Source: Auanema rhodensis (lineage: Eukaryota; Animalia; Nematoda). From it: DNA of 64,000 bases. The DNA lies in the NCBI GenBank assembly GCA_964057225.1, contig OZ059897.1:12276001-12340000 (forward strand). Direction: 5' to 3'. Below the pieces are notes generated by a model, which saw only the letters and a list, made by a program, of their open reading frames with translations, did not search any database and was not told the DNA's origin. Positions 20,332-32,739 of the stretch are shown here, in pieces. A program made the position numbers and the translations under genes. Numbering within the stretch: the stretch's first letter is position 1; the number at the start of each line of letters is the position of its first letter.

Positions 20332-21937
<1,606 letters not shown>

Positions 21938-28076: not shown

Positions 28077-29504
28077 TTAAATAGAATCTTCGTCGTGTTC
28101 GGTATGAGATCCAGCTGTTTTAGAAGGAGGTTGCAATTTAAACACCGCCAACTCTGTTTTGGCAGCAACTCGTTTGCATCCGGAACTAGAAAATACAGGC
28201 TTGTCCGCAGGAAAATACTGAAAGTTTTGATTATTTTCTATATTAATAGCATGCGTTACCTGTAGAGAGTTTGCAACTTGATTTACAATCTGAGGATCTT
28301 TTATTAACTCTTCAGCTTTTTTAGGAAATCGAGAACGTAAAAATTGATGAATACATAAAACAACATGTCTTCTTTCCAAAGGTAAAAAAGGAACGTAATG
28401 ATCAATTAACTGGTTCTTTATAATATCTGTGCGTTTCATACCACCTGAATATTATGATGACTTGTTTATATATATATACAAATATAATATTTACCATCTT
28501 CCAAGAACGCCTTATTCATTAGCAATCGTTCAAAATCATCTAAAGCCAGTGTACTACGATCTTTCCCATTGCGATGGTGCGATAGAGTAGTAGTTGCAAT
28601 TTCATCGCCTCCTCTATTGCTAAAAAAAAAGATTACGGTGAGAATAAGTACAACTTTCACCTCAACAAAATAAAAATACTTCTTCTGAAATCTACACCTC
28701 TTACATCATCATAATAATCCATGAATGGTTTTAAAGTCTCTGAATATACATCATTATAAAAAGCATGAACAAATATAATACCAAGAAGACGATCAGGCAT
28801 TTTATCAACTTCATCAAATATGAAAATTGATCGACCACATTTTTTTCCAGCAGCTAACAGTTCATTTCTCAAGACATCCTAATATAATAACAAATATGAA
28901 AAAATAAATTGAAACATACTTGGTAATGCGAGACCCTGCTTTTGTCAGGAAAGTCGGAAGTTGCAACAAAGTTATATATAAATCCACTATCTAAACCTTT
29001 CCTAAATAAAACAATTCTAAAACAAGTACTTAAGTTTATCAAGTTACTTGTATAAGTTTTCGGCAATTATCCGAGAGACATAGTTTTTACCACAGCCTGT
29101 TGGACCCAGAAAAGCTAGCGCAAGTGCTTTAACAGGTTCGGGGTTTTTCCAGTGAGCTACTATAGAATTCCAGAGATCTATCTGAACTAAATGCTGACCA
29201 AAAACATGATCCCGTAAATCAGTTCTCATTTCTGCATAACTTAAATTATTTGTATTGATGCATCAAAAATCATACTTTCAAAATTCGGAGTTAGATAATT
29301 ATCTGTACAGCATTCATAAATCTTACATCTAATTTTATCTTGATGACTCCAAAACCCCACTCCTCCTAATACAGCTGCTATACCTACAAGATAACAATAG
29401 AAACATGATTTAACATTATTATATGTACCAGCTACTACTGAAAAAATTTCAGCGTGTACATACAAGGTGAAACAGCATATACCGAGTATAGGACGTATCA
29501 ACAT
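28077..29504 (-). CDS. Torsin family ER AAA+ ATPase
   Basis: Signal peptide, VFGQHL, Walker A GPTGCGKN, FIFDEVDKM, IDHYVPFLPLER, FSSSGCK. Confidence 0.93.
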
Positions 29505-29682
29505 TGTCCTAGAAAAAAAAGAAGGAAATATTGCACATTGAAAATTGAATAGACTAGTTATTTATGGAATAAACCCATAATTACATGCTACTGATAGATA
29601 TTAAAAAATAATAAGGCATTTTTGCTGATATACACATACAACGAGGTGATGGATTATTCGGTGACATAGTTAATAAAACGAG

Positions 29683-30153
29683 TTAATCACAAGCTAAACG
29701 TTGAGCAAGTGGTAAAAAGTCTAAAGCCCGTAGTAAAGCAGATCTTTGTCCAGGCTCCTTATCCCATTCCCAGATCATGAGATTGGATCTGTCCGATATT
29801 ATATCGTATTTAGGAGCAGATGAAACTCCTTTATTAAAATAACATGAGCACGAAGACGTAAGCTAATCAAACCTTTTTTGCGATTTTCTTTTAAGATATA
29901 TAAATTGAAACCTTCAGGCATTGGGATAACTTTACCATTTAAACCACGACCTCTCAACGAAGCTTTACAAATATCAGCATCATATTTAAAATATCTAAAA
30001 CATTATAAAGAATAAAATATTTAACTTGCGATACTAATACCCGTCAATGTCTGCAGGTCCCGTGTAATCGAATTTACAGGGTATTGAATGAAGAGAACTG
30101 TTATTTTGTTCGGAAACGGTAGCAATTTTACAGGAAATGGACTCAGAGCTCAT
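29683..30153 (-). CDS. RNASEH2C: Ribonuclease H2 subunit C
   Basis: LHSIPCKFDYTGPADIDGYF..ASLRGRGLNG..PEGF..IWEWDKEP..ALDFLPLAQRL. Confidence 0.85.
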
Positions 30154-30998
30154 CACTGAAACAAACAATTAATTAAGAAATAACGAAATAGGGAAATAAG
30201 AAACACGATAAGAAAACAAGTAATAAACCTATCAATAAATCCTAATTTTAACAATATAGTCAAATTCTCCGCTAAATTTAAGGAATTATCCCATTCCGAA
30301 CAATCTACGTTAAGCTGCTTACGAAAAGTACCAAGATTGATGCCACTAGGGAAATCGAGAGGATTTCTCCAATCTACACATAAGGTTACTACGTGCTTTT
30401 CCCCGTTGGTCTAAAATAAGTTATGCTCTTAACTTCTCAAGAACATATAACCTCTATCTCGATTTTAACTACGAAGCAATCACTATTATCATCATCCAAA
30501 CTGTATCCCAATAGTTTACAGCCTGATATTGACTCAATTTCATTAATGAATCCGATACAATCATCGATATCGTTACAATATTTCTTGTAATCTTCAACGA
30601 TTGTTGTCAGCGAACACTAATAAAGCCAGAAATTGTTAAAGAGGAAATAGGTGCAAACCTCTGAGTTATGAGCCCAGTTAACGTAAAATCCAGATTGAAA
30701 AGCACATTTGAATATTGGAGCTTCAACGGGAAATTTTTCAGAGGGTCGAAAAGAGATCCAATATTCTCCATTTCTATACTATTAAATGCATTTTCTTTTT
30801 CAGCAGTCAAAACCTCAAGTCAAAATGAACCGCTGGTGATAATGGATTTTCGATATCCAAATGATCTTGAGGTAGTGAATACACTTGTTGAAGCCATGAC
30901 CAAATAAAAGATGACAACTTAAGTTCACGCTGTTTTTTCACATTTCCTTGGTATAAATAACACCAAGCAGGGTCGGATAATGGTAAGCCAGTATGCAT
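30153..30998 (-). CDS. FANCL-like double-RWD (UBC-like) protein lacking the RING; both ends uncertain
   Basis: Spliced: GEYWISFRPSEKFPVEAPIF..VNWAHNSE|CSLTTIVEDYKKY..FINEIE..|VTLCVDWRNPLDFP..WDNSLNLAENL. This parallels recalled FANCL YPAESP/WTPQSSL/VDPRHP..P/WDPENSVLQNL. Confidence 0.6.
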
Positions 30999-31152
30999 CC
31001 ACAAAAAAGAACGGATAAGACAATAAATAATAACCAAAGATATAAAAGGTGAGTAACCTTTCCAATGATAGTTGAAAGAATAAAATAAGTTGATAATTTC
31101 AAAATTTTCAACAAAAACGAATAACAACAACGTCAACAACAGTACATAACAG

Positions 31153-32739
31153 TTATAAAATTAATTTGTTCATGTTACTAAATCCTATTCCCATAACGGT
31201 CACGAGCGCTTTTTCTTTGCTTCCCATGGCCAATTCATTCTAAATTAATTGAGGATTAAGAAGTAATATAATTATAGCTAATTACTTCAGTCTCTTTGCA
31301 TACTTTGCTCCATTCATCTATCTTAAATTGGATTTCAAAAAACTGTTTTAAATGTCTTAAACAATTTACGCTGTAAAATATATATGTATTAAACTTATAA
31401 TATAAAAAGGTATCATACCTGTACATGGAGAAAGGGCCGAACAAATACTTTGAAACATCTTTTTGACCAACAGTCATAAATGTAGATGCTAAAGCTTGCG
31501 CTGAACCATCTAATGCACCACCCTGAATGACACTTTTTGAAAAATTCAACCCCTAAAAACTAACTCGATAAATTTCTGTTAATAGTGCTTCAGCTGCCTG
31601 AATTCCAACATCTTCGGCTACAATGGGATCACCAGCTTCACCCTAAAATCATAAAAAAGCTGATATTATACAAACTTTCAAAAAACCTTTGGCCGAGAAA
31701 GAGCTTCACCATGGTAGAACACACCCTCGGTTGTCTCGGCCGTGAGGAATAATCCGTAACCTGGTGAACTTAATGAACAATACATTAACTATTTAGTATT
31801 TTGAAAAAAACTAGTACTTTCCAGCAACATCTCCCTTTCGATGATCAACAGTTATATAAACATCAGAAATATATCCACTAAGTTTTTTTTTTGCTGCATC
31901 AATCATTCGATATGCTAAGGAAGGTGTCACTTTAGTGACGTAGGCGTGTCCTCTGATTTTACAAACTTTACCAGGTTTTTCTCTCTACAAAATTTAATAA
32001 ACAAACATTAAAGTATAAAACGCCTACCTTAACAGGCCTCAATGTTTTAACAATAGGAGCTGTGAAAATTACGCTCCCCCCTCCAGCAGGCTTAAGACCA
32101 CGAGCATTAATCTAAGATCAGGCATGGTAAAAAAATAGAAGAAAATAGAAGAAGCTTTACCTTTAAATCAAGTTTCTCATCATTCAAAACAAATTTATTA
32201 TAAACAGGAAGCCAAGTTGATTTCAGTGCATCAACCGATAATTCCCCAGGAGCATTGGTTACTCCTTAGAAATAAATAATAAAAAATTAAAGGAAAAATG
32301 ACATACCTTTTAATTTAATAGTCATAGGATTCTTACAAAACGGTGAAATCATAATTAATGGTTCCAAGAAATACGATAGACACCTTTCAGAACCACAGTC
32401 CATTGTGATAACTCCACCAATAATTATACCTGGCTTGAATCTTACCATTGTTCCTAGATAACACCAGAATATTACAATATCATACGGAAACTACCTGTAG
32501 CACTAATTTCTATTCTAGTTCCATTTGTTATTTTGTCCATCAGGTTTAAAAGTTTAGTTTCAAAATCTATATCATAGACTATATAATTTCAAAATGAAAT
32601 AACTACAAATACCTTTGATTCCTGGAGCATCATCATCTTTACGTATGTTACGAATTGTTATTCTTCTACCACTAAGAACAGAATAACAAATTCTCAAACG
32701 AAAAAAATTACATCCTTGGAATATTAGTTCTTCACTCAT
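31153..32739 (-). CDS. RCL1: RNA 3'-terminal phosphate cyclase-like protein
   Basis: FQGCNFFRLR..LSGRRITIRNIRKDDDAPG, RGLKPAGGG, SPGYGLFLTAET, ending GIGFSNMNK. Confidence 0.95.

Follow-up and report, generated by a model that had tools for sequence, protein, structure and literature searches.

The Fanconi anemia (FA) ubiquitin ligase FANCL combines an N-terminal ELF domain, a central domain (URD in human, DRWD in fly) and a C-terminal RING. The central domain (Pfam PF18890, FANCL_d2, and PF18891, FANCL_d3; structures 3ZQS, 3K1L, 7KZP and 6SRI) is built from two consecutive UBC/RWD-type lobes with a long joining helix. FANCL binds UBE2T, an E2 enzyme, by way of the RING, and FANCD2/FANCI via hydrophobic patches of the C-lobe in its central domain (PMC3173227). 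The lobes carry HPxxxP/YPxxxP motifs, and Trp-274 is reported to be completely conserved in FANCL (Hodson et al., PMC3173227; the residue numbering used here was checked against this work). In Caenorhabditis elegans FCD-2/FANCD2 and FNCI-1/FANCI act in crosslink repair; according to reviews, a component of the FA E3 ligase has not been identified there, perhaps due to sequence divergence (PMC9097270; also PMC3610817, PMC3173227). Here we report on a gene in a 64-kb stretch of the genome of the nematode Auanema rhodensis (contig OZ059897.1; hereafter the window) which probably codes for a stand-alone, RING-less homolog of the FANCL central domain with its two UBC/RWD-type lobes. An initial annotation of the locus, made from the sequence alone, had started from the premise that C. 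elegans is generally reported to lack FANCL, in agreement with the papers cited.

Two other groups of proteins are similarly built. BRE/BABAM2 (BRCC45, PF06113), a subunit of BRISC and BRCA1-A, is a non-catalytic scaffold in a ubiquitin-handling DNA-damage complex. Like the protein described here it has two UBC-like (UEV) domains, yet it comprises ~380 amino acids and its UEVs are split by a long middle region. The second group are the kinetochore proteins with tandem RWD domains, i.e. the C-terminus of KNL1, CENP-O/P and Ctf19/Mcm21, which are of similar size.

An expressed gene resembling the FANCL central domain

The FANCL-like gene is located on the minus strand (30998..30229). From reading and translating the sequence it has four exons, separated by GT..AG introns of 40, 42 and 41 nt. 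Exon 1 (30814..30998) starts with the ATG at 30998 and contributes 61 codons plus 2 nt, i.e. a short N-terminal lead and the beginning of the N-lobe. It is followed by intron 1 (30774..30813) and exon 2 (30659..30773), which codes for the N-lobe with the FPxxxP motif (KFPVEAP). After intron 2 (30617..30658), exon 3 (30452..30616) supplies the long inter-lobe helix (FINEIE) and the first C-lobe strands. Intron 3 (30411..30451) precedes exon 4 (30229..30410), which encodes the C-lobe with VDWRNPLDFP and an invariant Trp (SEWD). The translated exons further contain VNW...CSL and, at the end, WDNSLNLAENL.

Spliced, RNA-like Logan contigs of 2417-2426 nt were available from four runs. They matched the four exons exactly, with 0 differing letters, which confirmed the gene model. 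In the contig records the piece 30452-30616 was present as exon 3, the gap between the exon 1 and exon 3 pieces was 115 letters, which equals the length of exon 2, and at positions 466/467 nucleotide 30452 directly abutted 30410, a fusion found in 4/4 contigs. Beyond the joints displayed the contigs had four, which correspond to the three introns and one extra splice at the 3' end (see below). The RNA support consists of contigs from a single study, not of raw reads; Logan contigs retain the dominant path only and are uninformative on 5' ends, spliced leaders and isoform proportions. The FANCL-like gene is real, spliced and expressed, and its product has 219 amino acids. The introns of ~40 nt and the frame of ~200 residues postulated initially were thus borne out, as were all of the motifs then listed, and the contigs were spliced as modelled.

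Next, the relatives of the gene were searched for. The window exons were searched separately and entered the alignments as separate rows; two orthologs, P0001 and P0007, served as full-length proxies for the window protein. A phmmer search with exon 4 against 1.84 billion representatives retrieved P0001, an unnamed 235-residue protein from Auanema sp. JU1783 (E=1.6e-10), and a 71-residue fragment, P0004. A word-seeded protein search with exon 4 yielded no candidate on account of its length window. A profile of P0001 and the four exon rows added P0006, P0007 and P0009, all from Logan contigs; it also retrieved the partial hypothetical protein P0008 of Angiostrongylus cantonensis. The window exons were 50-58% identical to P0001 (exon 1, 54%; exon 2, 58%; exon 3, 53%). 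Three long repeat proteins (Calx-beta, fn3, LRR) from single-exon phmmer searches were spurious by Pfam scan. The orthologs thus cover Auanema sp. JU1783, Angiostrongylus cantonensis and Logan transcript contigs, have ~200-230 residues and start ~27 residues before lobe 1. As proposed, the window gene was missed by the track of open reading frames (ORFs); it was hidden in this respect only, as the orthologs in Auanema sp. JU1783 and Angiostrongylus are annotated and listed in the databases as hypothetical or unnamed proteins. The gene has escaped recognition rather than annotation.

The resulting family profile (A4, 218 positions) was compared with all PDB sequences. Three matches had E<1 and all were FANCL: 6sri_q (E=3.5e-4; profile 62-216 versus residues 142-290), the human central domain 3zqs_A (E=8.8e-4; separate stretches in both lobes) and 7kzp_L (E=7.8e-3). 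The matches were colinear over both lobes, which upheld the order and spacing of the FANCL URD/DRWD that had been claimed from the motifs. In the alignment FPxxxP of lobe 1 was placed on YPxxxP, VDWRNPxDFP of lobe 2 on VDPRHPTMLP, i.e. R-N-P-xxx-P on R-H-P-TML-P, and the invariant Trp on human Trp-274. Every member of the family has FPxxxP in lobe 1, V-D-x-R-x-P-xxx-P in lobe 2 and the Trp (CxxWD) equivalent to Trp-274; FANCL shares the FPxxxP-type motif in lobe 1, xPxxxP in lobe 2, V-D-x-R-x-P-xxx-P and the Trp. In Pfam the only family match that recurred was FANCL_d3 (E=0.0044 with exon 4, 0.024 with P0001, 0.052 with P0004 and 0.16 with P0009). In bits, FANCL_d3 scored 17.6 with exon 4, which was scored alone, and 15.2 with P0001; FANCL_d2 scored 13.2 with P0001, and P0004 and P0009 reached 14.2 and 12.6. 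Single exons against PDB gave nothing useful (flavodoxin and antibody noise), and exon 4 had no usable match in the Atlas feature search. An antibody heavy chain had E=0.0064 with the thin first profile but E=1.4 once the fuller family profile was used, and was discarded. Since the exons are 50-58% identical to an ortholog and the profile matches FANCL alone, with E-values down to 3.5e-4, the resemblance is beyond chance.

How does the protein differ from FANCL? At ~219 residues it is considerably shorter than FANCL (~375-380). It is devoid of both the C-terminal RING (FANCL_C, PF11793), which is the UBE2T site, and the N-terminal ELF domain (FANCL_d1). At the N-terminus only ~27 residues precede the first lobe, and the structural alignment (below) starts at model residue 28, equivalent to human residue 109. 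At the C-terminus the frame stops four codons past exon 4 and RNASEH2C follows with its ATG at 30153. No RING signature was found within a single frame by a regular-expression scan of all six frames of the whole 64-kb window, a scan to which a RING split by exons is invisible. No RING-like ORF was present after the gene in three strongylid-like contigs (L002-L004), and a distant RING exon was not joined to the gene in the RNA contigs. The initial annotation had noted the missing RING and RNASEH2C immediately downstream; the stop of the frame in fact lies within the RNASEH2C exon, and the RING is likewise missing from mRNA-level orthologs of other nematodes. Lacking a RING, the protein cannot act as an E3 ligase on its own.

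Structural comparison and other tandem-lobe proteins

Two AlphaFold models were used, P0001:1-216 (first model) and P0007 (second model). A Foldseek search against PDB had FANCL as the best two matches (E 0.027 and 0.049). In an exhaustive VIA-align comparison with 48,161 chains FANCL was first for both models. The first model matched 3zqs_B with Z 8.3 (167 residues, 28-213 versus 109-291), 3k1l_A with Z 7.1 (160 residues) and 7kzp_L with Z 7.1 (166 residues). The second model matched 3zqs_B with Z 8.8 (104 residues) and 7kzp_L with Z 8.0. With VIA-align a Z below 8 can be common. Thus, the structural check suggested at the outset ended with FANCL as the best match of two low-confidence models, and CENP-O/P and KNL1, named then as potentially better structural hits, ranked below it. 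The structures alone are only suggestive of a FANCL central domain. Taken together with the exclusive sequence-profile matches, homology to this domain appears quite probable.

Several observations weigh against this assignment. No family member reaches the curated Pfam cut-off of 23.7 bits, the best score being 17.6, so that of the Pfam check proposed initially the recurrence of FANCL_d3 stands and a score above threshold does not. The PDB profile matches have E-values of only ~1e-3 to 1e-4. Confidence in both models is low (mean predicted local distance difference test of 60); the C-lobe is usable (~75-86), the N-lobe is below 50. The structural margin over E2/UEV/BRE proteins is ~1 Z unit, near a tie by the criterion of the tool. 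Finally, the language-model features of the Atlas place BRE clusters (0.86-0.84) above the FANCL d2/d3 cluster (0.80); all of these are below 0.9 and are leads only.

Could the protein then be a tandem UBC/UEV/RWD protein without specific descent from FANCL, e.g. of a shortened BRE/BABAM2 type or of a kinetochore type, its likeness reflecting the superfamily fold and YPxxxP-type motifs? The Atlas puts BRE first (0.86, 172 shared features). The N-terminal UEV of BRE has Z 6.9 and 7.6 with the two models, KNL1 6.3-6.6 and Ctf19/Mcm21 5.5-6.5 over up to ~150 residues, and the sole single-sequence PDB match of P0001 was UBE2M (E=0.078). FANCL leads by small margins, in models of poor quality. Yet the A4 profile did not match a single BRE, KNL1, CENP-O/P or E2 chain in PDB up to E=10, whereas its matches to FANCL, three distinct sequences, had E-values from 3.5e-4 to 7.8e-3. 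Pfam BRE (PF06113) was nil up to E=1 in all members, whereas FANCL_d3 recurred. BRE and the E2/UEV proteins, the latter with Z ~6-7, aligned with one lobe only (91-101 residues), whereas FANCL covered both lobes and the helix (160-167 residues) and had the highest Z in both models. Tandem-RWD kinetochore proteins aligned over ~120-157 residues, but with Z 5.0-6.6 they were below FANCL in every search (Ctf19/Mcm21 and CENP-O/P together 5.0-6.5), and a sequence signal was absent. As to the Atlas scores, all are below 0.9 and shuffled proteins reach a first match of at least 0.8 about one third of the time. The BRE lead was dropped on account of Pfam, the PDB profile search and the one-lobe superposition. 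We consider an origin outside the FANCL lineage unlikely.

The junction with RNASEH2C

The FANCL-like gene is tied to its downstream neighbour by an extra cis-splice. A terminal GT..AG intron of 73 nt (30156..30228) is absent from the RNA contigs: the donor of exon 4 (30229/30228) is joined to 30155, two bases before the ATG of RNASEH2C (30153). The 30229/30155 junction is carried by 4/4 contigs. The depth bins, with 86 covered positions in 30070-30196 and 95 in 30197-30323, fit a coverage which stops at 30155 and restarts at 30229. After the splice the FANCL-like frame reads ...GFID-S-D-E-L-stop, with 219 codons and the TGA at 30145-30143. The FANCL-like gene therefore takes its stop and the four codons before it from the first exon of RNASEH2C, which contains the final 10 coding bases plus stop (30143..30155). 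The two frames overlap by 11 nt (AUGAGCUCUGA; window 30143-30229, minus strand). A spliced RNA which contains both the FANCL-like gene and RNASEH2C exists. RNASEH2C itself is probably translated from a separate RNA that would be trans-spliced at the same acceptor (30156/30155). The shared exon is a small extra curiosity of nematode gene packing.

A similar layout may be conserved in Auanema sp. JU1783, as judged from the genomic sequence. At the equivalent point of its contig (L001:6770-6870) a donor is present (CCTAG/GTTGTTACTTG compared with GATAG/GTTTATTACTTG in the window), and an acceptor is located 8 nt ahead of the RNASEH2C ATG. Because of this equivalent donor and acceptor, the hydrophobic C-terminus annotated for P0001 is probably an intron read-through.

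The terminal intron (30156-30228; L001:6777-6836) is open in both species, and upon retention it would add a hydrophobic tail of ~20-25 residues; in the window the frame then ends at the TGA at 30155-30153. As the RNA contigs splice this intron out, the tail, here and in the annotation of Auanema sp. JU1783, is probably translated intron. Most likely it is a by-product of T-rich intron sequence. A tail-anchored isoform from a retained terminal intron seems less likely.

In the 'SL1-type' operons of C. elegans, intercistronic space is lacking. The arrangement described here is alike in that the end of the upstream gene abuts the acceptor before the downstream ATG, so that processing of both genes should compete. 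It differs in that the FANCL-like gene is cis-spliced to this acceptor, borrows four codons and a stop and is not polyadenylated there.

Do the FANCL-like frame and RNASEH2C constitute one functional unit? Either the two-gene RNA would be the main product, with reinitiation at RNASEH2C where stop and start overlap, or the splice would tune RNASEH2C by competing with trans-splicing. The uniform 30229/30155 junction in the contigs, the stop at 30145-30143, 11 nt inside the RNASEH2C frame, and the equivalent donor and acceptor, 8 nt before the ATG, in Auanema sp. JU1783 are in line with such a unit. However, the contigs keep only the dominant path, and reinitiation after a frame of 219 codons is generally inefficient in eukaryotes. 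Moreover, the strongylid relatives lack RNASEH2C downstream of the gene, and the mRNA is monocistronic. A functional unit of the two genes therefore seems improbable to us.

Conservation, possible roles and gene neighbourhood

The orthologs P0001, P0004 and P0006-P0009 all end just past the WD..L..NLEK helix that follows the invariant Trp. The strongylid-like L005 is an mRNA contig with AATAAA and a poly(A) tail; it is monocistronic, has no RING, and its frame ends with ...EGPCEDEVISD* via a terminal mini-exon. In the genomic contig L004 only a mini-exon and the 3' untranslated region (UTR) are present before the next gene, Brix. Since the ends of the orthologs agree and L005 is polyadenylated, the form without RING and ELF is the mature product in several species. 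The ratio of non-synonymous to synonymous substitution rates (dN/dS) between L002 and L003 was 0.12 (dS ~1.0), which indicates purifying selection; the gene is not a relic. In several rhabditine nematodes purifying selection maintains the short architecture. That the locus is a decaying FANCL remnant or pseudogene, transcribed only by virtue of a busy gene cluster, is highly improbable: both flanking domains are lost, the frame ends by running into the next gene and the literature knows of no FA core complex in C. elegans, but at least five sequences, which come from several species, have an intact frame with the same ends, splicing is precise, a normal mRNA with a poly(A) tail exists for one ortholog, and the dN/dS of 0.12 at dS ~1.0 largely refutes decay.

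What might a FANCL central domain do on its own? Its free-standing occurrence is what is new here; a description of a RING-less FANCL relative was not found in full-text literature searches. The protein would be a non-catalytic binding module. In the reading we prefer, it would have kept the docking role of FANCL for FCD-2/FNCI-1, passing them to a separate RING/E2 or regulating their ubiquitylation. In such a mechanism the central domain alone would hold FCD-2/FNCI-1, and the catalytic step would come from a separately encoded RING protein or an E2. This docking function is a tentative proposal and rather doubtful; a repurposed scaffold without a role in the Fanconi pathway deserves a comparable share of credence. 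It is rather unlikely that rhabditine nematodes run a 'split' Fanconi ligase the expression of which is, in this lineage, coupled via the shared exon to RNase H2 subunit C.

Several findings weaken the case for a Fanconi function. The human substrate patches give a mixed picture, as their residues are only partly kept and differ among family members. L248 is replaced by F and F252 by I, L or M, both positions staying hydrophobic. The window and Auanema sp. JU1783 retain L254, for which strongylids have Ser. The six-residue loop which contains human I265 is missing here. The region of the W212/L214 patch aligns poorly. Furthermore, the ortholog search called for initially succeeded in Auanema sp. 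JU1783, Angiostrongylus cantonensis and Logan contigs and failed in Caenorhabditis, where the searches, with a 60-residue query and a word-seeded profile search, were weak for the purpose. Synteny did not provide a C. elegans ortholog either: RCL1 corresponds to ZK1127.5, and a gene of this cosmid, ZK1127.4, presumably its neighbour, is described as an ortholog of BCCIP.

A conserved protein that resembles the substrate-binding domain of FANCL and lacks the RING is a concrete candidate for the nematode Fanconi pathway. If it were part of a split ligase, it would be the first piece of the FA ubiquitylation machinery to be identified in nematodes, where this machinery has long been missing. Should it bind the FANCI/FANCD2 (ID) complex, it would illustrate how evolution can split or replace a RING E3; should it not, a domain of a ligase would have been reused as a non-catalytic module.

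The gene is a member of a same-strand cluster, RCL1 > FANCL-like > RNASEH2C > torsin (window ~28800-32600). The upstream RCL1-like gene ends at 31153, ~155 nt ahead of the FANCL-like ATG, and its contigs end at 31093. Between this mRNA 3' end and the 5' ends of the FANCL-like contigs (30999-31002, i.e. 1-4 nt ahead of the ATG) is a spacer of 90 nt (31003..31092, minus strand) which is covered by 0 contigs. Downstream, the RNASEH2C-like gene (29683..30153, minus strand) has exons at 30153..30041, 29994..29872 and 29827..29683, as defined by the contig joints. Its second exon alone matched Pfam RNase_H2_suC with E=3.1e-4 and 21.5 bits, over the cut-off of 20.8, and Auanema sp. JU1783 has the same neighbour. 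The torsin gene (Pfam Torsin, 3.8e-19) follows with its ATG at 29504. One RNA contig extends from the FANCL-like gene through RNASEH2C and, past the stop of the latter (29683), continues without interruption across the 180-nt spacer into torsin (29426-29827, minus strand), which fits a polycistronic RNA or overlapping UTRs.

In Auanema sp. JU1783 (L001) the order is RCL1 > ortholog > RNase_H2_suC > torsin > Brix > NADH_B2; synteny was checked for the four window genes from RCL1 to torsin, and over these the order is the same as in the window. In the strongylid-like relatives (L002-L004) it is RCL1 > FANCL-like > Brix; RNASEH2C and torsin do not intervene.

Is the cluster an operon? In operons of the SL2 type downstream genes are trans-spliced to a spliced leader ~100 nt past the upstream poly(A) site. 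The locus, initially called an operon, has the cis-spliced two-gene RNA and the compact same-strand cluster with its 90-nt uncovered spacer after RCL1, and is a putative operon only. Spliced-leader letters were not present on any RNA contig end, and the contigs cannot show 5' ends. The start of the contigs, 1-4 nt ahead of the ATG, is located at ...TTTTTTGTGG/ATG (30999-31010, minus strand), where an AG acceptor is lacking; in Auanema sp. JU1783 the sequence is ...TTTTTTGTGAG/ATG and an AG acceptor is present. Elsewhere in the window, two matches to the C/D-box small nucleolar RNA family SNORD31 of Rfam were recorded on the minus strand at 20683-20751 and 20975-21043 (41.9 and 41.1 bits, gathering score 40).

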